The position numbers and the translations under genes are program-made. Shown piece after piece: positions 40,817-64,000 of a DNA stretch of 64,000 nt. Location of the stretch: positions 372,001-436,000 of the forward strand of contig OZ037772.1 in assembly GCA_964035545.1 (NCBI GenBank), given 5' to 3'. The notes beneath the pieces are model-generated. The model ran no database searches. It saw only the letters and a program-made list of their open reading frames with translations, and was not told the origin of the DNA. Every line of letters starts with the position of its first letter. Within the stretch, counting starts at the first letter, position 1. This DNA comes from Bugula neritina (lineage: Eukaryota; Animalia; Bryozoa).

Positions 40817-43800
40817 TGACAGCGCTTCTTCATAGGATCTGCCAGTCACCCAGTAGTTGTTGTCACTAAACTATGTAAAATATATAGAGGTTAAAAGGTC
40901 ACTAAACTATGTGAAATATATAGAGGTCAAGAGGTCACCAGACTATCACCAACTTTCCATGTACCGATCTCAGATCGATCTCAGCGAGATCGATCCATGG
41001 GAAAATGCCAAAGATCGATCTCCGTCGATCTGAGCTGGTCGGCCTGTGGAGCTCGAACTCAGATCGATCTCATGTCAATAAGACCATGGAAAGACACCAT
41101 ATCGATCTGAGAAGTAGAAAAAGACTGCGTGCTACAATGTTGTCTGCTAATAAAAATGATAACTTATTGATAATTACTAAGCAAAGTATTAAATAATCAT
41201 GATAGCCGCCTTTTCAGATGCCAAAACTTTGACTTTCAGTACAATGATTAAGAAAACTCAATTATATGCAGAAGAAGGTAAAAAAAAATGGGAGAATTTA
41301 AATTGAGTTCAAATGACTATATTAAAACTCAGTTTCATAAGCTATTTCCTTTGTAATTTTAAGCCTAACAGTCCTGTAAGTTTATTAATAATCTGCAAGG
41401 GCCACACCCACTCCCGAAAGGGCCACACCCACTCCAGAAAGGGCCACACCCACTCAAGAAAGGGCCACACCTACTCAAGAAAGGGCCACACCCACTCCAG
41501 AAAGGGCCACACCCACTCCAGAAAGGGTCACACCCACTCCAGAAATGGCCACACCCACTCCGGAAAGAGCCACACCCACTCTAGAAAGGCCACACCTACT
41601 ACAGAAAGGGCCACACCCACTCCAGAAAGGGCCACACCCACTCAAGAAAGGGCCACACCTACTCAAGAAAGGGCCACACCCACTCCAGAAAGGGCCACAC
41701 CCACTCCAGAAAGGGTCACACCCACTCCAGAAATGGCCACACCCACTCCGGAAAGAGCCACACCCACTCTAGAAAGGCCACACCTACTACAGAAAGGGCC
41801 ACACCCACTCCAGAAATGGCCACACCCACTCCGGAAAGAGCCACACCCACTCTAGAAAGGCCACACCTACTACAGAAAGGGCCACACCCACTTCAGAAAG
41901 GGCCACACCCACTTCAGAAATGGCCACATTAGAGGGAATTCATAGTTTATCAACATAAACATAGTCTGTGGTAAATATTAGGTCTGTGCTAAACCCACTT
42001 GCTTTCTGTAAATAACACCAGACAAAATGAAGAATGACTCATACCTCAGCCTTAGGTTGCCCCTGGATCTGCACAAAGTAGGCTGGTATTCTGTGCCCCC
42101 ACCATAGCTGTCTGGAGATACACCAGCCCTTGGAGTTCCTCAGCCATTTGTACCAAGTGACTGCGTGATAGTCTGGTATGATCTTTAGCTTGCCTGATTC
42201 TACTACCTGCAGTATACATACTATGCTATAGATATACTATACTATAGATATACTATGCTATAGATATACTATGCTATAGATATACTATGCTATAGATATA
42301 CTATGCTATAGATATACTATGCTATAGACATACTATACAGTACTAATATATATACTACACAGTACCAATATATTATACTATACAGCACTAATATATTATA
42401 TACTATACACAGTACTAATATATATACTATACAGTACTAATATATTATATACTATACAGTACTAATATATATACTATACAGTACTAATATATTATATACT
42501 ATACATAATATATAATACAAGTACCTCTACAGCCTTGGCTGCCATATCGTCACATGCCACATATCACTGTGGTTTGGGTATCGGCTCAATGATATCTTTA
42601 GATCGACTATAACACAAGAGAACACAGTGTAGAGGTCATTGTTAACAGACAGACTCACATAGTAACAGTTCAACTCAACAGCATTGTAAAATATAATGGA
42701 TATGTTAATGGAGCTATTCTTTAGGAGAACAAGAGAGGACAACTTCTATTACATTGAGATCTGCAGCTATGAGTCATTTTACTTAACTTAATACACAAAG
42801 CTATATACCTTTAGCTTTTAGCTATTGTTCACAGTTGAGCTGCTAATTCAACATTTTAATGTAAGAAACTATACACATTAGCAGCTAAACTGTGAAAAAT
42901 AGCTAAGAACCAGAGATATATGGTGTGTACTAAACTAAGTAAAATGACTCACAAGTAAACATGACCAGGAAAAGTTCAGGATCTAACTGGACGTGTATGA
43001 AGAAAATGTAGAAATCTAACAAGTTGGGATAAAATTGTAGAGAGAAGACGACTCACCTACATACAGGAACTACCATAGGGTTGTCTTCCTTTCCTTTGTA
43101 TAGCCCCAAGTCTTCCAACCTTCTCTGAACAGCTTTACAGGCATCAAACCTGCACATGAAACTTACATGAAGTATAAATTGCTAATAGACTCACACCTGT
43201 CACCTGCTTACAAATGTCACCTGCTCACACCTGTCACCTGTACACAAATGGTATTAAACCACTAAAACCTATGTAGATCAATATTTTCTTGCTATTAAGT
43301 TGACTAATTGTGAAACAGCCAAAATAGGAAAATAAGACCTTGTAGTGCAGTGAGCAAGGCAAGTTCAAGCCATACAACTTTAACATGTTGCATTACAGAA
43401 GAAAGACCTGCTTCATTTTGGTAAATAACTATAAGTAATATTGGGAGTTACGCCACTTATGAGTAACAACATGGAGTTGTGTTTCTTTTCATAAACGCAA
43501 AAAGGTAAAAATTACTTGTTTCTTCGAGGTAGCACAACTCCTAATTGTGTGACATATTTCTAAGTTGAAATGGTTTTTCCTTGCATTATATAATATATAA
43601 TGCAAGGAAAAACCATATCAACTTAGAAATATGTCACACAATTAGGAGTTATGCCGCCTCTTTGTCAAAAACACGGAATACTAGATTCACACACCAAACA
43701 GTACTCAGTGCTATATGAATAGACTCCAATATAGTTCTCCCTCTGTATCTCAGTAAGCTGAGGGACCTGACACCTCAATTCATGATACAGTAGAATTCTT

Positions 43801-48000: not shown

Positions 48001-48493
48001 AACTTATAAGTCACAAGTACAAAGCAACTTATGCTCAGTCATCACTAATCCTAGTGGGTACGGCAAGCATATAGCATAATTTATTTCACAATGCGACAAG
48101 ATTATCTAGACGGTGCGCTTACGCCTCTCATTGTACTTAAGCAATATTCAATTGTACGGTTTTTATGACTTTAAAATCCGTTTTTAAGAAGCAAGGCTAG
48201 ATCGATATTGACTCGCTAAGAGCTTTCATGTAAACCCGCAAACTTATAAGTCACAAGTATAAAGCAACTTATGCTCAGTCATCACTAATCCTAGTGGGTA
48301 CGGCAAGCATATAGCATAATTTATTTCACAATGCGACAAGATTATCTAGACGGTGCGCTTACGCCTCTCATTGTACTTAAGCAATATTCAATTGTACGGT
48401 TTTTATGACTTTAAAATCCGTTTTTGAGAAGCAAGGCTAGATAAAAATTAATGATCGATATTGACTCGCTAAGAGTACTCATGTAAACCCGCA
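48001..48493. repeat. ~240-bp local tandem duplication, unit-2 specific
   Basis: AACTTATAAGTCACAAGT...TAAACCCGCA occurs twice (48001, 48241); single copy at ~18208-18460. Confidence 0.9.
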
Positions 48494-49863
48494 AACTACA
48501 ACTTTTAACTTGACCGCAAAGCTGGAAGTACGATAAGCGTCGCCGTATTGATTTCAGGCGAATTTTAGTTGATTTCTTTCAAACTGCTGAGAAGTAATAT
48601 TTGCTTCCATTTTATGTCTGATCGCGATGCAATTATAAATGTTCCTAATTCAATCAATATTATGAAATAATTAATGTAGGAAATTCAATTTTGACTATAT
48701 AGAATAATCTCAATCTGAATAAGTATTATTTATTTATTGTAACACTTGCACATCGTCTTAGCCTAGGGCCACACGACGCGTATTTTCGCACTCGTCGTGT
48801 GCGAAATGTCGCAAAAGTGAAAAAAGGAGTTTACTGTACGCGAATTTCATGCGTTGAAAATGCTGAACGGCAAGTGCGAAGATTTTTCTGTCGTCCTTAC
48901 CTAATTGGCTGGTAGTTATTTAGCGAGCCCGGTTTTCCTAATTTGCTACTCTTTCCATTAAATTGCGCATTATTTGTTGTATAGCGAGTAATATTTAAAA
49001 AGCAACATTTCTAGCCGTGTAAGTTTTCTACTTTCTGTGTATGTTTCTGCTATTCAGAATAGTCAAATTGATGTAATCAAACATTTTATAGATAAAAATG
49101 AACTGGCAAGAGAAGTTGATTAATGCAGTGAGTAATTTTCTTTACAATTCTTATAAAATTTGTGATAAAAAATGGCACTTTTTCAATTTCTCCGTGAGTT
49201 TCACTATGTCATACATTCAAAGTCAGTCATTCAGATTCAGTTATACTTATTGGCAATACTCATACTCATAGTGATAGTCGAACTCAATCAGTCAATGTGA
49301 ATGTCATAGTGATTGTTAGATTACCACAATGTAATAGTATGTCTTACCAGTGATAAAGCTGCTAGATGAAAGAGACCGTTCACTCTGTTTGTCTGGGTTT
49401 TATCTGCTTTAGCTTGTAGCTATCTCAGCTATACGGTGGCTGGTAGGGCAACTCTTAGTAACACGATAGCTCAAGTATCTGATAGGCTATTGTCATTAGC
49501 TAAACTCTCAGCGTGCCACTATAACATGCCCCCTTCCAATAAAGGCTGGTGACCACCTGCTAAAACTAAGCATTTCAATTACATACTATTTCTAAAAGCT
49601 ATAAGCTGATGAGTACCACATGTCTGTGGGTAAACTTACTCACCTCTATTTGCCAGAAACTGTAAACACAAGCTTTAACTATTTGTAATTTAGTAGTTCG
49701 CGAGTCAGTGTGTCGTTGAGTGTGTGAGTAAATAAGTAGGTGAGTAAGTTAGGTGAGTAGGTTGTTTAGTGTGTCGGTAAGTGTGTAAGTAAGTGAGTTG
49801 GGATCGGAGGATGTTCTCACCCTCTTCTCCCTCAGTCTCAGTTGCCTGAGACTGACCAGAACC

Positions 49864-50904
49864 TCAATGCAGTGCTTCGGGATTAGAAGATGTTTCCATC
49901 TTCACCTCCCCAGTCTCAGTTGCCTGAGGCTGACTAGGACTGTAGGTCGGTCTCAGACCAAGGTCTGAACCACCATGTACACCGGGGGTCTGGGGCTCTA
50001 CGGCCATTGACTCCTCCCAAGTGTCGTCCCGAGGGCAACCTGGGGTCGGCGACTCCTCTACGGCCTTTGACTCCTCCTGGTTACCACTGGGACCTTCCGC
50101 AACTGTGGTTGCAGGGTTTAGTATTGTGCTACCCAACCCTCTGGAATGCACGTTGGCCACGCTGGCCCAGTTTTCGATTGCTACTTTAATAGCCATTGAG
50201 CACTGATACTCCTTTTCCAAGAGACTCTCTCGCTCACTGATCTCTTCCATTTGCCTGTTGAACTTTCGTTGAAGTTCTTGCTTTTTTCTATTTAATTCCT
50301 CTTTCCTTAGTGCATAAGCCTTCCCATCCAGGAAGTCGCACCCCGTCAAGCCATTCAGGAACCCTGAAACTTCACTGACAATAACATTTTTAGGCTTTAA
50401 TGCATGAACATAGCTTGATGATGTAGCTACACCACCAGAGGCAACACTTGCATAGTTTGATTTCTGACTACCTGAAACCTTGGCTAATTTTGGTGCTGGA
50501 TCTTGAGAGTCAACACCATTAACAGCCTTCCGCTTGAAGCTAGAAGGTGCGTGACTACAGTCTGAGGTTTTGTGTTGGGCTGCGACACAACACCAACTGC
50601 AATAGACTTCTCTGCAGTCCTCCACCCAATGACCTTTCTGCCCACACCTGTAACACTTATTATTGGGACAGTCTCGGGCAGAGTGATCCCTGAAGCATCT
50701 ACAGATGGCACACCTAATTGTGCCCTTGTTGCCACATACCTCATGTGGCTTCTTAAGCTTAGCCTTATCTTCTGTATTCTTGGGCTTACCCTGGGGGTTA
50801 GCTACTTTTACCGTTTCTTTATGTCTTCCTGAGGGTCCGGCTTTAGACCAAGAGTCCATGTCGGGTTCCCCTATACCTTCCTTCTCTTTCTCACTATTGC
50901 TCAT
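49864..50904 (-). CDS. 346-aa protein with three zinc knuckles and a coiled coil (second ORF of the pol-less LTR element)
   Basis: ATG-initiated intact ORF: CAICRCFRDHSARDC, CYRCGQKGHWVEDC, CSWCCVAAQHKTSDC, then LRKEELNRKKQELQRKFNRQMEEISERESLLEKEY and an acidic tail. Confidence 0.8.
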   Translation of the reverse strand: MSNSEKEKEGIGEPDMDSWSKAGPSGRHKETVKVANPQGKPKNTEDKAKLKKPHEVCGNKGTIRCAICRCFRDHSARDCPNNKCYRCGQKGHWVEDCREVYCSWCCVAAQHKTSDCSHAPSSFKRKAVNGVDSQDPAPKLAKVSGSQKSNYASVASGGVATSSSYVHALKPKNVIVSEVSGFLNGLTGCDFLDGKAYALRKEELNRKKQELQRKFNRQMEEISERESLLEKEYQCSMAIKVAIENWASVANVHSRGLGSTILNPATTVAEGPSGNQEESKAVEESPTPGCPRDDTWEESMAVEPQTPGVHGGSDLGLRPTYSPSQPQATETGEVKMETSSNPEALH

Positions 50905-51094
50905 TGTTTGTCTCTTTCTCTATCTATATATTGTTTTTCTCAAGTTTTTTAAAACGATATCTATAAAAAACACATTATTATTTATACCTCTGCATGTTTA
51001 GTCTATTAGGAGGTTTGCTTAGTCTCCCCCGTCTAGTATGCGTAATTTCTCCTTGTTCAGGAGGAAATAACTTGCTGTCATTGCAATCATATAG

Positions 51095-52692
51095 TCAGCT
51101 TGCAAATCTGACTCTCCTATAACCCTTATTCCTATCACTACTCCCACTACTTGACCTATAAGGTTTGGTCTCTCTTTCAGGGCAATCTTTAGTGGTGTGC
51201 CCTCGGCAGTTACATACGAAGCACCTTACATCAGGGCAGTCCCTAATTCTATGATCATGTTTTTTACAATGATAGCAAAGATTTCCTTCTCTTCTAGGGG
51301 AGCTAAACCTTTTAGACCTAGAATGATAGTAACCCGAATTCGGTCTATCTACGAGAGGTTTTTCATCCCTCCTCCTTCGTTGGCTTGAACAGAATTTATC
51401 CCTACTATTGTAATGTTGTTTACTATGATCATCAGAGCTATTACTAGATCCACTCGAGCTTCTACTTCTATAGTGGTCACTATTCCTAAGGCTACTTCTC
51501 AAATAAGGTCTCCACTTTATTCTAGATCTAGAAACCCTATTAACAGAATAACTGTCACAGTTGTCACTGCTACTGTTTCTAGTCTGCTTAAGAGAACTTA
51601 CAGCCCCGACTTCTTGTTTGATGTCCACTATTTTCCTAGCTTCATTTAAAAGTAGGTATGAGTCTCTAGCTAGCTTTTTTGCTTTAGGCTTGGTATTTAA
51701 GTTGTGAGGATGAAAGAGAATACTTGCTGAGAGTAGGAAAACTTAGTAGAGAATTAGGTTTAGGTGCTGGGACCGAGGATGTTAGAAGGAGACTTAGTGT
51801 TGCCTTACCAGTAAATGGCTTGCGCGATACTAATGCTAGGAGACAATTATTGCAAGAACCCGATTTATCCTGGGACGACTTAAATACCAAGCTTAAAGCA
51901 AAAAAACTAGCTAGAGACTCAGACCTACTTTTAAATGAAGCTAGGACAATAGTGGACGTCAAACAAGAAGTCGGGGCTGTAAGTTCTCTTAAGCAGACTA
52001 GAAACAGTAGCAGTGTCACAGTTGTCACTGCTACTGTTTCTAGTCTGCTTAAGAGAACTTACAGCCCCGACTTCTTGTTTGACGTCCACTATTGTCCTAG
52101 CTTCATTTAAAAGTAGGTCTGAGTCTCTAGCTAGCTTTTTTGCTTTAAGCTTGGTATTTAAGTCGTCCCAGGATAAATCGGGTTCTTGCAATAATTGTCT
52201 CCTAGCATTAGTATCGCGCAAGCCATTTACTGCTAAGGCAACACTAAGTCTCCTTCTAACATCCTCGGTCCCAGCACCTAAACCTAATTCTCTACTAAGT
52301 TTTCCTACTCTCAGCAAGTATTCTCTTTCATCCTCATCAATGGCCTGTGACACTGTCACAAACCTCATTGTTTTAACATAAAAGCTATCTGACCTATCAT
52401 AGTGGCCCCTAAGTAGACCTAATGCTTGCTCATAGCCTTCATTCCCATTGTTTCTCAAATCAAAGCCAAGAGATTGTAACGTGGCTCTACCATCATTGCC
52501 TATTGCGCTCAACAATGCTAACAACTTAGTCCTACCTCTAAATTTATTTACTTCTACACCCTCCACTGTCTCTTTTCCCAGATTCAAAGTAGTTAACTCT
52601 ACTGTTATCTCAAATTGAGCTAGCCAATCATTCCATGATCCTGTCACATCATTACAATTCAATTGAAGTCTTGGAAATGAATTTAAATCCAT
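51095..52692 (-). pseudogene. gag: Gag of the pol-less element, split by an inverted duplication (reconstructed ~378 aa, two CCHC knuckles)
   Basis: 52692-52015 is capsid-like (W..WL..FE..KLLALLSAIG) and joins in frame to 51553-51095, which carries CYHCKKHDHRIRDC and CFVCNCRGHTTKDC. Confidence 0.8.
51705..52336. repeat. Near-perfect inverted repeat, 311-bp arms, 10-nt loop
   Basis: 51705-52015 is the reverse complement of 52026-52336 with 2 mismatches seen. A third ~150-bp direct copy lies at ~51553-51704. Confidence 0.95.
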
Positions 52693-53207
52693 GACTTTGT
52701 TGTTACAATTCCCTGTGCTACAAAGGTTACTACTTGTACTAGTTTGGAGCCTTGATTTACTCGTGTGTTATGTCAAGATGCCAATCACAAAATATCTTAA
52801 ACACTGAGTATCACTGTTTCGGTCACTTGTTGTAAATGACTGTAGTATCACAGTTGCCAGCTGTGAATCACGATATCAAATTAAGATTATCACTCATTAG
52901 ACTACACTAACAATAACACTACACTAACAATAACACTACACTAACAGTAACACTGCACCACCAGTAACACTGCACCAACAGTAGCACTGCACCAACAGTA
53001 ACACTGCACCAACAGTAACACTGCACTGCACTGCACTACACTGCACTACACTACACTACACTACACTACACTACACTACACTACACTTATATTATTATAT
53101 TATATTCAAAACACTTGCAACTGATAATGATTAATTGAAGAAAGTACTTATCTATCATCTATAGTTGTAAGGACAGAAAGAGGTTCTCACTGGCAGGTTC
53201 GTTAAAA

Positions 53208-53221
53208 TGCTGACTGCGCCA
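53208..53221 (-). promoter_or_regulatory. Primer-binding site, probably tRNA-Ser
   Basis: + strand TGCTGACTGCGCCA abuts the LTR and resembles invertebrate tRNA-Ser 3' ends (...CCTGCTGACTGCG-CCA). Confidence 0.65.
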
Positions 53222-56200
53222 TGTTAGATTACCACAATGTAATAGTATGTCTTACCAGTGATAAAGCTGCTAGATGAAAGAGACCGTTCACTCTGTTTGT
53301 CTGGGTTTTATCTGCTTTAGCTTGTAGCTATCTCAGCTATACGGTGGCTGGTAGGGCAACTCTTAGTAACACGATAGCTCAAGTATCTGATAGGCTATTG
53401 TCATTAGCTAAACTCTCAGCGTGCCACTATAACAGTGATACTAGTGTTGGTCAGTACTGCACATCATCCAACACGTAATAATGGTTCAATTCATCATTTA
53501 TACTATTTGTTGTTCTAATTTCAGGTCAGGGAAAGACCATGCTTGTGGGACAAGAATCATAAACACTACATGTATAAAACTGTGAAAGAAAATAACTGGA
53601 AAGATGTTAGCAAAGAATTAGGAAATTTATTTGATGGTAGTTTATCAGTTTAATGAAGTAATTATGTCTATTGTAATCAGATATTTAATCTACCACTTTT
53701 CAAGTTTACTTTTGACTTTTATAATCTTTAGAAAAAGCATGTGCTCTGAAGTATCGGAACTTGCGGGACACCTACGTGAGACTGAAAAGAGAACAGTTAA
53801 AAGTACCCAGTGGCTCTAGTCCGATTGAACCGCCAAAATGGCCTTTTTTTCAATTGTTCAGCTTCGTGGATAATAAGAGTGGTGCAGAAAGGTTGGTTTG
53901 TCCTTACGTTAAGTAGTTTATTTATTTTTTCAACAAACAAACTTTAAAAATTATAAAATTATTTAATACACATCAAGTAATTTATTTTGCAGTAGTATAG
54001 CTGACAATATGCCATCAGAGGATATCGTGCAAGAACTTGCGACCACTGATACAGATACAGCGACAGCAAGCAGCCAGCAGCCGGCAGCCAAAAAGAAAAA
54101 AAATGACACTGCAATGAAAGAAATAGACTTGGAAATAAAAAAAATAGTTACTCTGTTAGTACAGTTACTCTGTTAGTATAGTTACTCTGTTAGTATAGTT
54201 ACTCTGTTAGTACAGTTACTCTGTTAGTATAGTTACTCTGTTAGTATAGTTACTATGTTAGTACAGTTACTCTGTTAGTACAGTTACTATGTTAGTATAG
54301 TTACTCTGTTAGTATAGTTACTCTGTTAGTATAGTTACTCTGTTAGTATAGTTACTATGTTAGTATAGTTACTCTGTTAGTACAGTTACTCTGTTAGTAT
54401 AGTTACTCTGTTAGTATAGTTACTATGTTAGTACAGTTACTCTGTTAGTATAGTTACTCTGTTAGTATAGTTACTATGTTAGTACAGTTACTCTGTTAGT
54501 ACAGTTACTATGTTAGTATAGTTACTCTGTTAGTATAGTTACTCTGTTAGTATAGTTACTCTGTTAGTATAGTTACTATGTTAGTATAGTTACTCTGTTA
54601 GTACAGTTACTCTGTTAGTATAGTTACTCTGTTAGTATAGTTACTCTGTTAGTATAGTTACTCTGTTAGTATAGTTGTAGTGAATTTTGCCAGTTCACTA
54701 TGATTATTTGTGGGTCTACTTAATCAAAGCCACTGCGACAGGTTGTTTACGATAAGATACTTTATTATTTACACAAATATAAGAAGGTTATTTACTGCTA
54801 GCATGAATAGAAAACGATTACATAATTAGTGAGCTTTAATACACAACTGTTCTAAATGAAGTCCCAAGCTGCTCTGCCGGCTAGCTACTCAGCGCACTGC
54901 AACTACGAGTAGCTAGCTCCACCTGCTATCAATTAATGTCATTGTCCTGATTGGTGGCTACTAGTGGTGCCACTACTGCCCATAGCTACACTCCGACAGT
55001 GTCGAACTCACAAGATGCATAAAACAATATAGAGTTAAACCTTTTCGATTAATACCATAATACTTGCACCACTAAAATCTACCACACTCGCCACACCTAT
55101 CGAAAAGTACACTCTACAATTGATGCACATAATCTCAAAAAAATAACAAAAGGAATAAAGGTAAAATAAAACAAAAAGATCAAAACCCCAGGAATGAGAG
55201 AACACAAAATATGTATTCAAAACGATGTCCATGTTGTACACGATCGATCCGGGTCAGTCACAGGGTAGGGGGGGGGGTCTCTTCACCAAATGATGTAGGG
55301 TAGCATGAACTTAGTGAGAAGGAGATGTACTGCTTCACACTCGTCTAGTCGAAGCCAAGCGATGGGGGTCGAGGAGTCCCCAGAAGAATCAAGCGTGGCA
55401 AAGGAGTCTCTCCCAAAGGGGGGAGAGAGTGGAAGGAATCTCCCCAAAGGGGGGGAGATGGAGGGGGGGTTGACTGGTCTCTTTACTACCAATGTCTACC
55501 TCGTCGCCGTCGAATTCCCAAAGGGAAGAAGGGGAAGACTTCTTCTTCTTAATTTCTATTTTTAACTTCATGTAGGAATCTTTAATATTACTTCTTCTTC
55601 TTAACTTCTATTTTTACTTTTTAACTTCATGCAGGAATCTTTAGTACTACTTCTTCTTCTTAACTTCTATTTTTATTAGGATGTAGCCACCGGAGAGAAA
55701 AGGGAGGAGCTACTCTGCCTATACCGGAACGTGATCGCCAGAGGAGAGGAGGAAGGAGCTACGTGCCAGTTGTCTCTGGCACTTCTGTTATGACAGCCAT
55801 CAGCCTGCTGTCATGTCGCTACAGGAATCCAGTCAAGCAGCCAGCATCTAGCCAAAAGTTGAGATGAATAATGTGACTGCGCTATGCCATGAGAAGGAAT
55901 TTGGCCCCGCCATTCCAGTCTCACCTGCAACAGAATGCCAACAACTGTTGAGGGGGTTTGCACCTGTCAGTACGACACCTCAACTGAGTCTCGCAATCAC
56001 TAACCACTGATTAATAATTAATCATGTGGTCGACCGCCCCACTCAAGTCGTCAGTGAATCACCTGACTTGGGAAATCAACTTTATCGTTATGATAAAGCG
56101 AGACTGATTTAGGCTACCAGCTTGAATTCTACTTAAATAATAGAATTATACTAGTAGACTTACCATAAGACAGCCCTGACTTTAGTCTGCTGCCCACTTA

Positions 56201-56372
56201 GGCTACGTAGTGCGCCAGCCTGCCAAGTACATGCGTGCACGTTGGCAGTTGAATCAGAAAAGAACGCTTTCCGCAGTGAAAGTGATTGTATAACCCCCTT
56301 TCACTAGCGAGCTGACTTCGCTCATTTCTTATCCCCGGTGGTGTTTCGTGTCACACCACTGGGGTAGGCAAC

Positions 56373-59300
56373 TCACAATTGCGTCTCCTTATACCTTGGA
56401 AACGCAACTCTCAATTGCTCGTCCCCCCAGATTTCTTTTATGATAGCAGATGGATGTTTTTCCACTGCATCACACAAGAAATCTTTTAAATAAGATGGAG
56501 GCGCCCTAGTGCGTTGGCTACGCTCCAACTGCACTGGGGAATTTGCTACGACTGGTGACTCTTCCACCACGGGTGGTGTCGCCAGTACGGGGGGGTCCAC
56601 CAGTACGGGCGGTCCCCCCCCAGCTGCCTCTTCCTCATGATTTTGAGGAATTGCCATCTCATCCGGGACGATGGGCCTGTCGACCGGCTCCACAGGTGGT
56701 GGGGCCGGCTCCGACAGGTCTTTAGGTGTGTCGACCTCCTCTTCCTGGGGTGGAGGAGGTGGGGGCTGGTCGGCTGGCGCATCAGCCGCCCCGTCCTGGT
56801 CTGGCAGTATCTCCTCAATCTCTCGATATGCCATGGGTCGCCCCCTCATAGGAGGGCGCCTAGCTGGCTCTAAGAGAGGAGGTGCTTGACCTGCCGCATC
56901 AGGACTCGCCCAGTGAGGTTTAAGCCGTGCCTCGTTCTGGACCGACACTTGTCCAGACCGTTCCACTTTGTATGTATGATTTGGCATTACCTCAATTACG
57001 CAGTAGGGACCTACGAACTTCGGCTGCAACTTGGCTGCCTGTCCGCGCCTGCGGCGATGACTGGTCATCCAGACCCAGTCCCCCACCTTGTATAAGGGTG
57101 GGTCGTCAGAGTCACCACTCCTGACCTGCCACTGCTGCTCACGTAGCACCTCGTGAGCCGTCCCCATGCGTTTTACGAGCTTGTCCACGTAGTCGTGGAC
57201 ATTGCTCTCTGGATTCGGAACATGATAGGTTACGTGCTCAGGAACCCTTGTTTCTCTCCCCAGCATGAGAAAATTAGGGGTCTCCAGTGTACTGGAGTGA
57301 GGGGTACTACGGTACGCTCGCATGATCTGCGGCAACACCAAGTCCCACTCTTCCTGGCTCCTACCGATAAGCAGGCTTCTCAGAGAGTCCCCTAGCATTC
57401 GGTTGTTCCGCTCCACGACCCCGTTCCCTTGCGGGTGATACGGGGTCGTCCGACTCTGGTTTACCCCCCACATTCTACAGAGATCGCTCATAAGTTGCGA
57501 CTGAAACTGGGCGCCCTGGTCAGAGTGTATCTGCTCCGGCAAGCCGAAATAGCAGAACACCTGTTGATCCAGAGCTCTGGCCACCGAGGGGGCCGACGCA
57601 TCTGGAATAGCCAGTGCATCAGACCACCGCGTGAAATGGTCAGTTAATACCAGTATCCAGTTATTACCTCTCGCTGTAGTGGGCATGGGGCCTACCAGAT
57701 CGACAGCAACCACCTGCCACGGACGACCGGCATGGAGGCGACGCCTCCCTGCGGTCTCAGTGGGGCGGCCATGCTTGCTAGCTTGGCACACCTCGCACTT
57801 CCGCACCCGGAGTCGGACATCCCGGGTCATACCGGGCCAAAACCACTGGAGTTGAAGACACCTGATCACCCGGCTAGCTCCTGCGTGAGCTTGCTTATGG
57901 GTGTCCCAGATCAACTCCCGCCGCAGAGCTGACGGGCAGACTACCCTCTCTCGTTCACTGCGATTGGTGCCGACTGCCAACGTAATCGTTAGCAGCCCAT
58001 CGCTGTTGAACCTTAGGGAGTCCCAGCGGTCACAGAAGTACTTAAACTCAGTACTCTTCACTCGCTGTTCGGCCTCACTTGGCCGCCGTCCCTCCTTCTT
58101 GGCCCGGACTAGGTCAGCTACCACTCCTGGTAGCGTGGACTGGAGCCGGCATAGCTCCCTGACGTTCCGAAGCAACGTGGGGTTTGCGTGAAAGTTGTTA
58201 ACAGCTTTGTTGGGTGATTCGGACAGGAGTTGCCCTTCTTCCCAGCTGTACACACCCGCTTTCCCCAACTGCGCTTCGACGTCCGAGCGAGGGGGTCCAC
58301 CGTCCCTGCGCTCGATATTCTGGCATTGCTTACACCCATCTGCCTGGCGGCGGCTGAGTCCATCTGCATTACCGTGTTTCTTACCGGGTCGATGCTCGAT
58401 CCGATAGGAAAACTCTGCCAGGATCTCTAGCCAGCGCGCCACTTGGCTGGATGGTTCTGCCCGTCGACACAGCCATATCAGGGACGCATGATCCGTCCGA
58501 AGCCGGAATGTGCGCCCATATAGATATGGTCTAAAGTGTTTGACCGCCTTGACTACTGCCAAGAGTTCCCTCCTGGTTGTACAGTAGTTCTTCTCAGGCG
58601 CCGACAGGGCCTTGCTATAGTAAGCCACCACCACCTCGCGACCATCTTGGACCTGCGACAGCACAGCCCCCACATTATGGTTACTGGCATCAGTATCCAA
58701 AATGTACTCCTTCGCAGGGTCAGGATACGCCAAGATGGGTGCTTCCACCAGGCGATCCTTCAGGTGGTCAAATGCCTTCTGCTCAACCTGTGTCCACTGC
58801 CATCGCACCCCCTTTGCGGTCAGCCGATTCAACGGCTGTGCAATTCCTGCGAAGCCTGGTATGTACTGACGATAGTACCCCACCAGCCCCAGGAACGCCC
58901 GCAATTCAGAGAGGTCGACAGGAACAGCCCAGTCCCTCACAGCCCGTACCTTCTCGGGGTCAGTGGCGACCCCGTCTCGACCAACTACATGGCCCAGGTA
59001 CTTGACCTCGCGTTGCAGTAATGCACACTTCGAGGGCTTTAGCTTCAGGTTAGCAGCTCGGAGTCTGTCGAACACCTCCCTGAGTCGACTGACATGTGTG
59101 TCGAAGTCGGGGGAGATGACGATGACATCATCGAGATATATGAGCAAGGTCTTCCAGTGCAGCCCACTCAGGACCTGCTCCATGAGTCGCTGGAAGGTGG
59201 CTGGTGCGGACGTAAGTCCGAATGGCAACACCTTCCATTTCCAGAGCCCATCCCGCGTTATGAACGCGGCCTTGTCCTGTGCTTCAGGACTCAGGGGCAC

Positions 59301-60923
59301 CTGCCAATACCCGCTTAGCAAGTCCAACGTGCTGAAGAACTTGCTACCAGCTAAGGCATTGAGCGACTCATCGATCCTCGGGAGAGGGTAAGCGTCCTGG
59401 ATGGTCACGCTGTTCAGCCTGCGATAGTCAACGCAAAACCTCCAGCTACCATCCTTTTTCCGAACCAGGACGACTGGAGAACTCCAGGCCCCATGGCCTG
59501 GCTCAATCAGGTCCCGGTTCAGAAGGTCTTGCACCTGACGGCTCACTTCTCTCTCTTTCTCAGGACCTAACCGGCGGGTCGGCTGCCGAATCGGCACCGT
59601 CCCCGCCGCCAGGGGTATCTCATGACGAACCGTCTCAGTCAGACCCATGTCATGGTCGCTGCAACTGAACATGTCTTTGTACTCAGAGAGTAGCCGCGCC
59701 ATCACCAGGCGTTCTCGCTTGCTCTCGCAGCCATCACAGGCATCCTCGTACAACTCTGTTACGTGTTCAGGCACCGGCCCCCTGCCGTCTCTAGTGGGTA
59801 CTCCCCGGGCACCGCCCGCTGTTTCCAGCGCGGGCCCTACATCCTCCTCTTGCACGGAGTGGAACTTCCCTACTAGAGACCCAGCCGGTAATTCTACCGG
59901 CTCCGTGAAAGGGTTTACGCACTGGACCAGGAACTCCCTCCGCTCATCCAGTCTATTCAGACTGTTAGCGAGCTGGACGCCCCCCAGTGCACCTTCCACC
60001 ACTCCGAGCTCGGAGATCTCCCTACAGTTCACTCTGCAGCGAACTGTAGCCCGGGAGCGCCCAGGTACAGTACAGCGCTGTACCACCTGCACTCCCCCCA
60101 CCAAGGGTCGGCCAAATCGGTCGACACAGGCCAGCTCACGCCCCGCCATCACTACTGCCGACTTGCTAAAGTCGATGTAGCACCTGTGTCTCTTCAGAAA
60201 TGGCATGCCCAAGATGGCATCCTCCTTGAGTTGACTGACGATGAAGGTCTCACTGATCATCTGATCACGGACTCTACCAGTCAACTGGATTACCCCATAG
60301 AAAGGAATACACGACCCGTCCGCCAATGTGCCGTGTTCCCCCTCATATGGTTCTAGGCTAGCCCTGTCCTTGGCACTGAGAGTGTCGAAGAGACGTCGAC
60401 TCAGTAGATTTGTGGTACACCCAGTATCCAACAGGAATGTGGCAGCTTTACCAGCAATTTTGCCGGGGAGGAAATAGCTGCTTCCATATGGCTGGGCGCT
60501 CACTGAGCGATTTGTCTCTTGAGGCGACACCTCATGTGCATGGAATTGGGGATGCACCTGTGCTCTGCGGTTGCGAGGGGGTCGTCGACGTTGCATGGGC
60601 GGGCAGGGTACGTCTCGGTCTCGCTCACGCACGGGCGGCCGAGTGAATTCTCGGACTGATGCTCGTGCGGGCAACCGAGGAAAATCCCTGTTGTGCTCCC
60701 ATTCGTCGTTCACTCCCTCATCAAGCAAACCTTCAAAGCGGTTTTTGAGTGCCCAAGCCGGAGGTATTGGTGGGCCTTGCGGCCGACTCACTCTCCTTGG
60801 GACTTGCCACTCTGGCGAAGGCGGCCTCCTCACCCGATGGGGTGGGGGCCGTAGCCTTTGCCTTGGGGGGTTAAACTCGGGCCCACGGTAGGCGGAAGTT
60901 ACCGTGGGCCGTCGCTGTTTAAC
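56373..60923 (-). CDS. pol: Gypsy Pol (protease, RT, RNase H, integrase), entered by -1 frameshift
   Basis: LLDTG protease; LPFGL and YLDD RT; TDAS..RELLAVV..TDH RNase H; HHCC, DLVGP, HSDQG and ERNNR integrase; GPY motif. Uninterrupted ORF. Confidence 0.97.
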   Translation of the reverse strand, partial: VKQRRPTVTSAYRGPEFNPPRQRLRPPPHRVRRPPSPEWQVPRRVSRPQGPPIPPAWALKNRFEGLLDEGVNDEWEHNRDFPRLPARASVREFTRPPVRERDRDVPCPPMQRRRPPRNRRAQVHPQFHAHEVSPQETNRSVSAQPYGSSYFLPGKIAGKAATFLLDTGCTTNLLSRRLFDTLSAKDRASLEPYEGEHGTLADGSCIPFYGVIQLTGRVRDQMISETFIVSQLKEDAILGMPFLKRHRCYIDFSKSAVVMAGRELACVDRFGRPLVGGVQVVQRCTVPGRSRATVRCRVNCREISELGVVEGALGGVQLANSLNRLDERREFLVQCVNPFTEPVELPAGSLVGKFHSVQEEDVGPALETAGGARGVPTRDGRGPVPEHVTELYEDACDGCESKRERLVMARLLSEYKDMFSCSDHDMGLTETVRHEIPLAAGTVPIRQPTRRLGPEKEREVSRQVQDLLNRDLIEPGHGAWSSPVVLVRKKDGSWRFCVDYRRLNSVTIQDAYPLPRIDESLNALAGSKFFSTLDLLSGYWQVPLSPEAQDKAAFITRDGLWKWKVLPFGLTSAPATFQRLMEQVLSGLHWKTLLIYLDDVIVISPDFDTHVSRLREVFDRLRAANLKLKPSKCALLQREVKYLGHVVGRDGVATDPEKVRAVRDWAVPVDLSELRAFLGLVGYYRQYIPGFAGIAQPLNRLTAKGVRWQWTQVEQKAFDHLKDRLVEAPILAYPDPAKEYILDTDASNHNVGAVLSQVQDGREVVVAYYSKALSAPEKNYCTTRRELLAVVKAVKHFRPYLYGRTFRLRTDHASLIWLCRRAEPSSQVARWLEILAEFSYRIEHRPGKKHGNADGLSRRQADGCKQCQNIERRDGGPPRSDVEAQLGKAGVYSWEEGQLLSESPNKAVNNFHANPTLLRNVRELCRLQSTLPGVVADLVRAKKEGRRPSEAEQRVKSTEFKYFCDRWDSLRFNSDGLLTITLAVGTNRSERERVVCPSALRRELIWDTHKQAHAGASRVIRCLQLQWFWPGMTRDVRLRVRKCEVCQASKHGRPTETAGRRRLHAGRPWQVVAVDLVGPMPTTARGNNWILVLTDHFTRWSDALAIPDASAPSVARALDQQVFCYFGLPEQIHSDQGAQFQSQLMSDLCRMWGVNQSRTTPYHPQGNGVVERNNRMLGDSLRSLLIGRSQEEWDLVLPQIMRAYRSTPHSSTLETPNFLMLGRETRVPEHVTYHVPNPESNVHDYVDKLVKRMGTAHEVLREQQWQVRSGDSDDPPLYKVGDWVWMTSHRRRRGQAAKLQPKFVGPYCVIEVMPNHTYKVERSGQVSVQNEARLKPHWASPDAAGQAPPLLEPARRPPMRGRPMAYREIEEILPDQDGAADAPADQPPPPPPQEEEVDTPKDLSEPAPPPVEPVDRPIVPDEMAIPQNHEEEAAGGGPPVLVDPPVLATPPVVEESPVVANSPVQLERSQRTRAPPSYLKDFLCDAVEKHPSAIIKEIWGDEQLRVAFPRYKETQL
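60880..60923 (-). promoter_or_regulatory. -1 programmed ribosomal frameshift signal
   Basis: G_UUA_AAC in the gag frame (60917-60923), a 6-nt spacer, then a perfect 11-bp stem GGCCCACGGUA/UACCGUGGGCC with a 9-nt loop. Pol is in the -1 frame. Confidence 0.85.
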
Positions 60924-61768
60924 CGCCTCCCACTGCCGCGGGGGCAACTTCGTAGGAAGTGCCCACCACTACCACAGCCCCAGCATACGGGGCCGCGCCT
61001 GTCGGCGACAGCTACCGACGACCTCTTGGGTCTCTCGGCTGTCGCCTGCTGGCGCAGTTGCCTGAACTCGGCGAGCAGTTCTCGAATCAAGCTCGTGGTT
61101 AAGCTAGATTCGTCTGCTGCTGCCGCTGCGACTTGTACAGCTGTCTTCGTTGACGACGTCGACACGTCGTCTGCCCCGACTTGCTGTACTGTCGCGCCAG
61201 GTCGACTTGCACTGTCGGCTTGGAAATAGGCATTCCCAAGCCTTAGAGCTCTCTCCATAGTCTCAACTTCGGCCACCAGCAGATGCTGTTTAAGACCGAG
61301 GTTGTTAATAGACTGGAGGAATGCATCCAGTGCTAGGCTCTGTCGACCATCGGCAGGCAAGTCGCTGTAAGCAACTTGTGCCAGTCGTTCGACTACGGTA
61401 GCGTGCTCTCGCAGATTGGTCTTAGGATTTCTCCTAAGACTCTGCAGTTGCACGCGAGCATCTCGAGCGGTTAATCCAAACCTAGCTCGTATTGCTTCAA
61501 ATATGTCACCGACATTCTGGCTTATCCCATAGGGTTTAGCCGGCCCTGTCAGACACAACCGCAGCTGGATCAGAGTAACCCTGTTCGGCCATCCGCAGAT
61601 GTCCGCCACATCACTGAACTCAGTGATGAATTGCTCCACATCTTCTTCTCCAGAGAAGGTGGGAGCCCGCAAGTGGTACCTGTCCATAGGCAGCGCTGGG
61701 CCGCCTATGTGATCCTCCTCCATTGCTGCTGGCTCCTGTCGGGGCGCGTCGACGACTTCGTCGGCCAT
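60899..61768 (-). CDS. gag: Gypsy Gag (289 aa) with CCHC zinc knuckle
   Basis: ORF starts just after the PBS; retrotransposon capsid-like N-terminus (APTFSGEEDVEQFITEF); knuckle CWGCGSGGHFLRSC. Confidence 0.93.
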   Translation of the reverse strand: MADEVVDAPRQEPAAMEEDHIGGPALPMDRYHLRAPTFSGEEDVEQFITEFSDVADICGWPNRVTLIQLRLCLTGPAKPYGISQNVGDIFEAIRARFGLTARDARVQLQSLRRNPKTNLREHATVVERLAQVAYSDLPADGRQSLALDAFLQSINNLGLKQHLLVAEVETMERALRLGNAYFQADSASRPGATVQQVGADDVSTSSTKTAVQVAAAAADESSLTTSLIRELLAEFRQLRQQATAERPKRSSVAVADRRGPVCWGCGSGGHFLRSCPRGSGRRLNSDGPR

Positions 61769-61804
61769 CTTACTCCCTGACTAGGGGCATTTGTATTAAG
61801 TGTG

Positions 61805-61822
61805 ATCCCACCGCTGCCACCA
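61805..61822 (-). promoter_or_regulatory. Primer-binding site, tRNA-Leu (AAG/UAG family)
   Basis: The + strand reads ATCCCACCGCTGCCACCA, matching the conserved metazoan tRNA-Leu 3' end plus CCA; it lies 1 nt from the 5' LTR. Confidence 0.85.
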
Positions 61823-63070
61823 GTGTAGTGAATTTTGCCAGTTCACTATGATTATTTGTGGGTCTACTTAATCAAAGCCACTGCGACAGGTTGTTTACGA
61901 TAAGATACTTTATTATTTACACAAATATAAGAAGGTTATTTACTGCTAGCATGAATAGAAAACGATTACATAATTAGTGAGCTTTAATACACAACTGTTC
62001 TAAATGAAGTCCCAAGCTGCTCTGCCGGCTAGCTACTCAGCGCACTGCAACTACGAGTAGCTAGCTCCACCTGCTATCAATTAATGTCATTGTCCTGATT
62101 GGTGGCTACTAGTGGTGCCACTACTGCCCATAGCTACACTCCGACAGTGTCGAACTCACAAGATGCATAAAACAATATAGAGTTAAACCTTTTCGATTAA
62201 TACCATAATACTTGCACCACTAAAATCTACCACATAGTTACAGTAAAAGTTTGCTAGTCATAATAACTTGCACTGTTAGTTGCTCGACAAGTTATTCTAC
62301 ATCTCTTGTAGCCACAACCAAAGTGGTGTCTATATATCCTGCTAGTGACTTGAGTAATGACTCATATGTAATTGTAATTAATTACATATCTAATGTAATT
62401 GATTTTTGCAATTACTTTACAATTACATCTCAATTACTTTAAACTTTTAAATCTTAAAATCTTAAGAAATTTATTCTTTTTTAGCATGACTACTGTTAAA
62501 TAACAAGTACAGATTAAGTCAATGTAGTATAGTATCACTTTTGCGAACAAAGCACGTTCACCCCTGTCAAAATTGCCCCTGCTAGGTGGACCCTAGAGGT
62601 GAAATTGCATAACTTCTATTTGTCCTTTGTGAGAACAAAAGTAATTGTAATTAATTGCTTTACAATGTAGTTTTGTACTGTAATTAATTACATTTATTTC
62701 AACTGTAATTATAATTGTAATTGTAATTGACAAATTCTCATGTAATTGTAATTAGTTACATTCACATGTAATTGACCCCAACCCTGGTTTATTATGGAGC
62801 TCATACTTTTATTGTTCAAGGTCTAGATGTATTCTCCACCATGTTTTTACTAGAAGTAAACTTTAATTTGGTAATGAGTATAAAATAAACTGTTGTTTCG
62901 CATTGTACAGTTTACTATTGCCTGAATATTGTATTGAGAATATTGGCTTAACAATTCCAGTGCAGCGATGTGATTGGCCTGACAATATCAAAGTAGTGAT
63001 GTGATTGGCTACTCTGTTCTGTTCTGCAGGGCCATGCCTACTTGTATTATGTGGTAATCTTGTTTTGCAG

Positions 63071-63832
63071 TGAACAGAAAGGGATAATGAGTCCCAAAAG
63101 ACACCCGGGATCTTACCATGGAGAGGAAGGGTTCACCCGATGTTGATGGCCTGCCTGGTATATCCGGCAATCCTGGAGATGCAGGAGAAAGGAGACCACC
63201 TTGTTTCTCAGGAGATACCGGACTTTTTGGAGAACCAGGTAATGTTTATGCTCAATTGAGTTTAATCTGTCAAGTTATGTTGGGATCTTTTCCGTTGTCG
63301 TTATTTTATGTTTGTTACGTGGAAAAAGGAAAAAACTCTGTCTTGGAGCATTTTGGTTTTTTCAGAGAGCTTTGGATTATTTGATTATGGTCTACACAGG
63401 GGTGTAGACAGACTAAACAACACAGGGGTGTAGACAAACTAAACTAGACAGGGGTGTAGACAGACTAAACAACACAGGGGTGTAGACAGACTAAACAACA
63501 CAGGGGTGTAGACAGACGAAACTACACAGGGCTGTAGACAGACTAGACTAACTAGTGGTCTAGATGGACTAAACCTACTACGAACTTACAATTACCTTGC
63601 GTCATGACGTCTCTATTCTCTCCTATAATTTGACCTTTATTTAGGGAGCAGATTTCTAGTGGGCTATTCTATAGTGACCAGTCACACTGTTTATTATAGC
63701 AACATAGAAATCAAGTTGAAAACTAGTTGCACCTGTTGTGATGCTATCAATGGGTGCTTACAGGTAGAGACGGAGTACCCGGACCTGTTCAGATCGGTTA
63801 TCAGGGTAAACAAGGAGATCAAGGTCCTGCAG
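63071..63832 (+). pseudogene. Fibrillar collagen pseudogene, copy 2 (first Gly-X-Y exons; continues beyond the window)
   Basis: Near-identical to 21981-22775, with the same Gly-to-D/R/C replacements. Confidence 0.85.
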
Positions 63833-64000
63833 GTAAAAATGAGGAGTTACTCACCCTTGCTTGTGTATTTCTGTTCTTTTTAGGTATTCTATAATATGCT
63901 GGGGTTTCCCTCACAGCTATTATATATGCTGGAATTCCCCTCACACCTATGATATATACCGGGGTTTCCCTCACAGCTATGCTATATGCTGGGGTTTTCC

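Follow-up and report, generated by a model that had tools for sequence, protein, structure and literature searches.

The LTR retrotransposon and its missing pol

The stretch of DNA analyzed here (the window) comprises 64,000 nucleotides of the genome of the bryozoan Bugula neritina (assembly GCA_964035545.1, contig OZ037772.1, positions 372,001 to 436,000 of the forward strand), and its minus strand carries, at 49314-53434, a 4,121-bp long terminal repeat (LTR) retrotransposon with a gag gene, split in this copy, and a second, intact open reading frame (ORF), ORF2, in place of pol. The two LTRs, of 213 nt each, start with TG and end with CA (TGTTA...TAACA), are 100% identical to each other, and are flanked on either side by a perfect 5-bp target site duplication (TSD), GTGAT, a match expected by chance once in 1,024 cases. 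The primer binding site (PBS), TGGCGCAGTCAGCA, lies immediately 3' of the 5' LTR on the element strand and opens with TGG, complementary to the CCA end of tRNAs, and the polypurine tract (PPT), GGAAGGGGGCA, reads GGAAGGGGG followed by CA and abuts the 3' LTR on its 5' side. Identical LTRs, a perfect TSD, a PBS, and a PPT had all been reported in the initial annotation of this locus, and each was seen again with a repeat finder, with BLASTN, and by direct reading. The element is thus real and well formed, with the TG..CA repeats, a TSD within the 4- to 6-bp range, the TGG-type PBS, and the PPT that characterize LTR retrotransposons.

The absence of any difference over the 213 nt of the LTRs indicates that the insertion is very young. 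A sequence scan found no further copy of the LTR elsewhere in the window (0 expected by chance), and the LTR itself contains neither a TATAAA nor an AATAAA motif. No tRNA gene was detected in the window by ARAGORN, nor did Rfam give any match across it; the primer may be tRNA-Ser, which we offer as a lead.

The 3,695-nt interior consists of a 529-nt leader (PBS included), the gag region (52692 to 51095), a 190-nt spacer, ORF2, and a 337-nt trailer; the 5' and 3' untranslated regions, the two genes, and the spacer fully occupy these 3.7 kb and leave no room for pol. Pfam returned only zf-CCHC for the internal ORFs, with no pol domain among them, and tblastn searches of the element with Gag and Pol (1,524 aa) of a neighboring Gypsy element (described below) as queries gave a best E value of 0.075. 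A 39-aa frame that follows the gag stop was considered as a protease remnant and discarded, as it has no Pfam match. The protease, reverse transcriptase (RT)/RNase H, and integrase that mark an autonomous element are missing from 49314-53434, and the element is young, pol-less, and non-autonomous. These searches confirm the absence of pol noted initially, and the identical LTRs together with the missing pol uphold the original reading of a young parasitic element; from the same data, we infer that it borrows Pol in trans.

ORF2, a three-knuckle protein

ORF2 starts with an ATG and is intact. Its three zinc knuckles, spaced CX2CX5HX4C, CX2CX4HX4C, and CX2CX5HX4C, match zf-CCHC (PF00098) with 25.2 bits against a cut-off of 20.8, and both the ORF list and the alignment agree with the initial description of an intact 346-aa frame with three knuckles, two of them of the CX2CX5HX4C spacing. 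A HMMER scan of 1.84 billion representative proteins returned 95 hits (25 at E ≤ 1e-10), and about 20 stand-alone relatives, of 360 to 470 aa, align over ORF2 residues ~24 to 340 with 26 to 37% identity and E values from 2e-31 to 1e-13. In an alignment of 17 family members (A1), all the knuckle Cys and His are invariant, the invariant columns being 16 in total, and the conserved motifs comprise KVYG before the first knuckle, RDH within it, CPGN after it, and SYA and KVxSFL further on. None of the matched representatives is fused to an RT, has a capsid domain, or contains a Pfam domain other than the zinc knuckles. A word-index search seeded with the profile of the ORF2 family brought up no additional proteins other than those of Bugula; among metagenome contigs, there was no ORF2 relative, the family alignment yielding only knuckle-level hits (L001-L012); viral contigs matched neither ORF2 nor a gag alignment, and prokaryotic genome contigs matched neither gag nor ORF2.

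AlphaFold2 predicts a knuckle module at residues 55-125 (predicted local distance difference test score, pLDDT, of 81 to 86), a short helix at residues 174-187, and a long helix at residues 194-256 (pLDDT of 88 to 96), the rest being disordered. The long helix, which is conserved in the family, spans 63 residues with a moderate heptad regularity (10 of 18 a/d positions are hydrophobic) and is plausible, in the model, as a coiled coil or oligomerization segment. The tail (residues 257-346) contains 15 D/E versus 4 K/R, is predicted to be disordered (pLDDT <50), and is freely variable, with no conservation in distant relatives. Of the coiled coil and acidic tail initially ascribed to ORF2, the tail is borne out, whereas the coiled coil is one plausible reading of a single predicted helix. 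Matches to sequences of the PDB are confined to the knuckles, with AIR2 (E = 1e-11), Lin28, and HIV-1 Gag and nucleocapsid, and the Foldseek comparison suggested at the outset gave weak nucleocapsid and Lin28 knuckle matches only, with no fold match beyond them.

A profile-profile comparison of the ORF2 and gag families aligned 39 knuckle columns and nothing else; the early impression that ORF2 cannot be aligned to the element's gag therefore holds outside the knuckles. We rejected the idea that ORF2 is a duplicate of that gag because the likeness is limited to these 39 columns, and the idea that it is a fragment of a capsid-nucleocapsid gag because it aligns end to end with the stand-alone proteins and has no capsid domain. 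On the basis of these sequence comparisons, ORF2 is a complete member of a distinct family, unnamed and undescribed. Two other candidates were discarded. An env-like third ORF, as in errantivirus-type Gypsy elements, would have a signal peptide and/or a transmembrane segment, whereas ORF2 has no signal peptide and no hydrophobic or membrane segment along its length (maximum 19-residue Kyte-Doolittle hydropathy, 1.19). A nested insertion that brought in ORF2 was set aside because a repeat search of the interior showed neither terminal repeats nor TSDs there. Downstream of ORF2, there is no trace of poly(A). Of note, the last ~70 nt of ORF2 are repeated past its stop (49792-49862 matches 49871-49940, with 77% identity over 71 nt), as if 78 nt had been duplicated in tandem, long ago, at the 3' end of the gene.

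ORF2 shares closely spaced CX2CX4HX4C-type knuckles with the retroviral and Ty3 nucleocapsids, AIR2, and Lin28, a likeness that ends at the knuckle module of ~40 to 60 residues. The knuckles of Gag proteins are preceded by a capsid domain, whereas those of ORF2 stand first in a protein that has no such domain. In its combination of a helix, a nucleic-acid-binding module, and disorder, ORF2 resembles ORF1p of the long interspersed nuclear element (LINE) LINE-1, in which a long oligomerizing helix, a nucleic-acid-binding module, and disordered regions make up an RNA chaperone that forms ribonucleoproteins (PMC3258132, PMC10202459). The resemblance is that of a functional analogue only: ORF1p has an N-terminal coiled coil, an RNA recognition motif (RRM), and a C-terminal domain, whereas ORF2 has three N-terminal CCHC knuckles and no RRM. 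Consistently, ORF2 gave no Pfam match to RRM or Transposase_22, nothing past the helix is folded into a domain in its model, and neither a sequence match nor a fold match to ORF1p was obtained. We propose that ORF2 binds nucleic acid via its knuckles and self-associates via its helix, and would thus act as an oligomeric chaperone whose binding module recalls a nucleocapsid and whose general layout recalls LINE ORF1p.

A rearranged gag gene

The gag of this copy is not intact: it is split by an inverted and a direct duplication. The arms of the inverted repeat (Table 1), detected by the repeat finder and BLASTN, are 314 nt long, 99% complementary, and 4 nt apart; a base-by-base check counted 3 mismatches per 314 nt and placed the center of the palindrome at 52019-52022. 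The same check found 5 mismatches over the 153 nt of the direct repeat and narrowed its limits to those of Table 1, the repeat finder having first given 51537-51705 on 51998-52166. Followed along the element, gag runs normally to residue ~224 and then folds back over 314 nt; it resumes at a point 153 nt upstream of the turn and from there reaches its normal end. The N piece, of 253 aa, thus comprises 225 aa of authentic gag (52692 to 52018), corresponding to a helical capsid-like domain, and ends in 28 antisense-derived residues and a stop, without knuckles. The C piece (the frame ending at 51095) comprises a Ser/Arg-rich linker, two CCHC knuckles (51277 to 51182), and a conserved RRVRFAS end, and it contains no methionine. 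Each piece was searched and folded on its own, and in the alignment with relatives the overlap of the two coincides exactly with the duplicated segment. The proposal that the element supplies its own capsid consequently fails for this copy, whose gag is split and whose nucleocapsid part has no ATG. As for the two zinc-knuckle ORFs that had been described, ORF2 stands, whereas the gag is not one ORF and its knuckle piece is devoid of methionine.

The two-switch pattern fits template switches by a polymerase, either during reverse transcription on non-identical templates or in an ancestor copy. Alternatively, the duplication at 51553-52336 could be a chimeric read or an assembly error and the true gag could be whole, as was assumed initially. 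Palindromic chimeras are a known artifact of amplification and of long-read libraries, and the gag C part of a second Bugula copy (see below) reads through the position of the palindrome center. The latter observation also means that the rearrangement is not obviously shared between copies. However, the forward strand resumes after 314 nt, 153 nt back, as is typical of polymerase template switching, and both the arms and the direct repeats carry mismatches, which copies of a single molecule should not; these mismatches argue against a simple single-molecule artifact. Overall, we consider an artifact of this kind rather improbable. One public B. neritina assembly is based on HiFi reads with 132-fold coverage (PMC11480708). 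As a natural event, the fold-back represents a clean case of double template switching in a very young insertion.

With the 225 authentic N-terminal residues as query, a word-index search retrieved 21 gag relatives with 41 to 94% identity, mostly 41 to 61% outside Bugula. In intact relatives, which are 359 to 394 aa long, a Ser/Arg-rich linker connects a helical N-terminal domain to two CCHC knuckles, and the C-terminal RRVRF is conserved. The N piece is 86% identical to one of them (P0103) and the C piece is 87 to 93% identical to three others (P0123, P0141, and P0142), and the C piece matches zf-CCHC with 24.0 bits (gathering threshold, 20.8). In an alignment of 15 gag relatives and the N piece of the window (A5), 12 of the 16 sequences gave matches to the Pfam family PNMA, all of them below threshold (best E = 2e-5, 24.5 bits for a cut-off of 25), and the N piece itself gave none. 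PNMA is a domesticated family derived from the gag of Ty3/Gypsy elements. The N domain is modeled by AlphaFold2 as all helical with a small beta-hairpin (mean pLDDT of 72). Architecture, position, and this faint profile signal hint at a Ty3/Gypsy-type gag. The short LTRs and the two-knuckle gag are compatible with the Mag clade without being diagnostic of it, since that clade is defined by pol, which is absent here.

Table 1. Parts of the retrotransposon, numbered by position in the window
Feature	Positions	Strand	Basis or remark
TSD, left copy, GTGAT	49309-49313		identical to 53435-53439
3' LTR, 213 nt, TG..CA	49314-49526	-	100% identity to 53222-53434
PPT, GGAAGGGGG + CA, adjoining the 3' LTR	49527-49537	-	direct reading
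3' untranslated region	49538-49863	-	degenerate short repeat at 49707-49801; diverged 78-nt tandem copy of the ORF2 3' end
ORF2, 346 aa, ATG start, intact, ~37.7 kDa	49864-50904	-	ORF list, Pfam, HMMER, AlphaFold2
ORF2 acidic Pro/Ser/Thr-rich tail, residues 257-346	49867-50136	-	composition; pLDDT <50
ORF2 long helix (predicted), residues 194-256	50137-50325	-	AlphaFold2, pLDDT 88-96
ORF2 three CCHC zinc knuckles, residues 65-116	50557-50712	-	alignment, Pfam zf-CCHC, pLDDT 81-86
Spacer, gag stop to ORF2 ATG	50905-51094	-	four ATGs, TATAAATA motif, T-rich tract + AG
gag C piece, two CCHC knuckles, no methionine	51095-51628	-	ORF list, Pfam, alignment
Direct duplicate of gag segment 52014-52166	51553-51705	-	5 mismatches/153 nt
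Inverted copy of gag segment 52023-52336 (fold-back)	51705-52018	+	3 mismatches/314 nt
gag N piece, 253 aa	51931-52692	-	ORF list, alignment to relatives
5' untranslated leader	52693-53207	-	17-nt and 5-nt tandem repeats at 52901-53087; donor-like site, G at 53190
PBS, TGGCGCAGTCAGCA	53208-53221	-	directly 3' of the 5' LTR
5' LTR	53222-53434	-	identity to 49314-49526
TSD, right copy, GTGAT	53435-53439		direct reading

Mobilization, origin, and surroundings of the element

With gag broken and pol missing, Gag function and Pol would both have to come from a related autonomous element elsewhere in the genome. Pol usually enters particles as a Gag-Pol fusion, and the helper is therefore expected to carry a gag related to that of the element, LTR ends that match, and an identical PBS. 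The searches that were run found no autonomous partner. A full-length, apparently intact Ty3/Gypsy element lies nearby on the minus strand (54676-62234), with a gag at 60899-61768, a 1,524-aa pol containing protease, RT, RNase H, and integrase, and a GC content of 55 to 58%, versus ~38% in the surroundings. Its LTRs (TG..CA) are 411 nt long and 100% identical, the direct comparison having extended to 55086 and 62234 a match for which the repeat finder had given only 300 nt. Its LTRs and their termini, its PBS, its 4-bp TSD (TAGT), and its gag are all unlike or unrelated to those of the pol-less element, and we therefore ruled it out as the helper, in line with the initial annotation, which had thought it an improbable one.

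The closest ORF2 proteins are encoded by B. neritina itself, namely KAF6026596.1 (95% identity over residues 94-346), KAF6033916.1, and two chimeric "nape-2" models (79%), and further fragments with 61 to 98% identity are found in the JGI and Logan assemblies; the spread of identities and the fragmentation have the look of a multicopy transposon family. Based on equal contig size and common source rather than on direct sight, we assign P0123 (a gag C part), P0004 (an ORF2 N terminus, 98.5% identical), and P0127 (an ORF2 C part) to one JGI contig of 8,090 nt, and P0141 (a gag C part) and P0001 (an ORF2) to another of 7,934 nt. The second Bugula copy shows 87% identity to the window in the gag C part and 91 to 92% in ORF2, which is interrupted there after residue 68; this similar divergence suggests that the two genes diverged together, and the pairing of gag and ORF2 appears to recur in at least one other Bugula copy. 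In the two nape-2 models (P0002 and P0132; KAF6026879.1 and KAF6016785.1), an ORF2-like segment (79% identity to residues 98-295) is fused to a metallo-beta-lactamase part resembling N-acyl-phosphatidylethanolamine phospholipase D, probably an annotation chimera created by a transposon copy beside or inside a host gene.

The largest contigs that carry distant ORF2 relatives cluster at 6.1 to 7.2 kb, and in one cluster identical 427-aa relatives occur on contigs of 6,705, 6,720, and 6,733 nt; as a lead rather than as evidence, these sizes suggest that the contigs may be complete repeat units with the dimensions of an autonomous retroelement. They bear on an alternative in which the family normally has an autonomous gag-pol-ORF3 layout, with ORF2 as an ordinary 3' accessory gene at the place that env-like genes take in other Ty3/Gypsy lineages, and in which pol was lost from this copy, through a deletion or a template jump, in the cycle that scrambled gag. 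In addition to the contig sizes, this scenario draws on the location of ORF2 just upstream of the PPT, on splice-like sites placed as in env mRNAs, one resembling an acceptor before ORF2 and one resembling a donor past the PBS, and on the clear template-switch damage in the gag of the same copy. Yet the 190-nt spacer holds no pol remnant, and ORF2 is not env-like, having neither a signal peptide nor a membrane segment. Furthermore, the second copy, with a protein divergence of 9 to 13%, has its gag C part and ORF2 on a contig of ~8 kb, which fits an old, propagating pol-less lineage, although pol could be present there. We judge a one-off deletion to be unlikely.

Another scenario holds that ORF2 is a passenger with no role for its carrier, acquired by template switching from an ORF1- or gag-like gene of another class of retroelement (non-LTR or tyrosine-recombinase) or from a host gene; the capture of oncogenes by replication-defective retroviruses offers a parallel. 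Such an origin would accord with the stand-alone nature of the ORF2 family outside Bugula, where several near-identical members occur per cluster, with the likeness of ORF2 and gag in the knuckles only, with the ORF1p-like association of nucleic-acid binding and a long helix, and with the TATA-like motif upstream of the ORF2 ATG. The ORF2 segment, however, is bounded neither by terminal repeats nor by a TSD, nor by a remnant of poly(A), and the similar divergence of gag and ORF2 between the two copies means that a capture would not be recent. We give this scenario little credence; besides, it concerns only the origin of ORF2 and is compatible with the explanation that we prefer.

That explanation, which we consider probable though well short of certain, is that the element belongs to a non-autonomous, two-gene LTR family with a Ty3/Gypsy-type gag and no pol, of which it is a recent insertion, and that its ORF2 is a nucleic-acid-binding chaperone. 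In this copy, gag would have been broken by two template switches (the fold-back), leaving the inverted and direct duplications. RT, RNase H, integrase, and protease, as well as a working Gag, would be supplied in trans by a related autonomous element, and ORF2 would coat or help package the element RNA, or compete for the helper machinery. Since all of gag and four additional AUGs precede it, ORF2 is out of reach of scanning on the genomic RNA and would need a subgenomic mRNA. In the spacer, the four ATGs are accompanied by a TATA-like TATAAATA motif (50986 to 50979) and by a T-rich tract with an AG (50970 to 50961) that resembles a 3' splice site, 56 nt before the ORF2 ATG, and no ATG occurs between 50960 and that start. 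The leader contains a single donor-like site, CCA/GTGAGA (G at 53190), just after the PBS. An ORF2 mRNA might thus be produced by splicing of this donor-like site to the acceptor-like site, or might start from the TATA-like motif acting as an internal promoter.

Several points weigh against the explanation that we favor. The palindrome could be an assembly artifact, in which case gag would be whole. The splice- and TATA-like motifs are not above chance expectation, ~0.5 donor-like matches being expected in the 529-nt leader by our own estimate. A Foldseek search of the gag N domain against the PDB and BFVD gave no significant capsid match (all E > 0.2). The pol-less layout is proven for the window copy only: co-location on the JGI contigs is indirect, and the 8-kb contig of the second copy could hold pol. 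Across the Bugula copies, substitutions fall evenly along ORF2, from the knuckles through the linker and the helix to the tail, and several of these copies are in fragments, which points to a neutral decay of genomic copies. The intact ORF2 of the window is no evidence for selection either, since the identical LTRs mark a copy too young to have decayed. The distant family, in which only the knuckles and the helix are conserved, bears instead the signature of long-term selection in lineages that stay active.

Gag-only, non-autonomous LTR elements, which had been put forward as a precedent, are well documented in plants: the TR-GAG elements keep LTRs, PBS, PPT, and gag, have no protease, RT, or integrase, and are considered semi-autonomous and mobilized in trans (PMC13570524). 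A second precedent comes from zebrafish, where the recently active and recently recognized as biologically important BHIKHARI-1 and BHIKHARI-2 encode gag and neither pol nor env (PMC12067270). The Bugula element resembles TR-GAG in its LTRs, PBS, and PPT, in having a gag gene in its family, and in the absence of pol. It differs by its animal host, by its gag, which is retained as an ORF in the family (the 359- to 394-aa relatives) and not in this copy, and by the presence of ORF2, an additional intact gene whose likeness to gag stops at the knuckles, whereas gag is the sole gene of TR-GAG. BHIKHARI-1, BHIKHARI-2, and chicken ENS-1 are, like the Bugula element, animal non-autonomous LTR elements; compared by their descriptions, they are endogenous retroviruses (lokiretrovirus or ERV-L-like) with Gag-only coding, a single ORF, and no second knuckle gene. 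The new feature with respect to TR-GAG, BHIKHARI, and ENS-1 is a second, separate, and family-conserved knuckle-helix gene in place of pol. Replication-defective transducing retroviruses also keep their LTRs and cis signals, have pol replaced by a foreign gene, and depend on a helper. Their foreign genes are cellular oncogenes, usually fused to gag, whereas ORF2 is a separate gene in a multicopy, transposon-like family and recurs in diverged copies.

A bolder version of our proposal, which we advance tentatively and hold to be unlikely as it stands, is that gag and ORF2 without pol constitute a stable, long-propagating two-gene parasite of an autonomous retrotransposon, in which ORF2 would represent a widespread and hitherto undescribed class of three-knuckle coiled-coil proteins encoded by transposons and forming ORF1p-like ribonucleoproteins, and would either coat RNA in the manner of LINEs or act as a decoy that hijacks or restrains the helper. 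If the gag-ORF2 layout propagates, it would be a novel form of equipment for a parasite that exploits another parasite and would give a first genomic foothold to an unnamed protein family known from many marine assemblies. If it results from a one-off deletion, the element is an ordinary defective copy.

The surroundings of the element offer some additional observations, and no part of the window resembled human DNA. In its flanks, the plus strand shows a donor-like AATGCA/GTGAGT (~49137) and an acceptor-like TTTCAG/GTCAGG (~53527), and judging from these motifs, the element might sit antisense within a short intron of a plus-strand host gene. A 17-nt satellite (31 copies, 54144-54676) abuts the LTR of the neighboring Gypsy element; its unit matches that of the 17-mer array in the leader of the pol-less element (52901-53087) at 12 of 17 positions in inverted orientation only, and at 9 of 17 on the same strand, a likeness that may be fortuitous or may mark what is left of another member of the family. 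A 180-aa ORF on the plus strand (41313-41855) matched the herpesvirus gp350 C-terminal family in Pfam (E = 2e-7), for which low complexity rich in Ser/Thr is a more probable cause than homology. Tandem repeats occur at 48001-48442 (240-nt unit, 1.8 copies, 99% identical) and at 63394-63574 (26-nt unit, 7 copies), and short tandem arrays are also present at 62716-63009 and 63894-63997.

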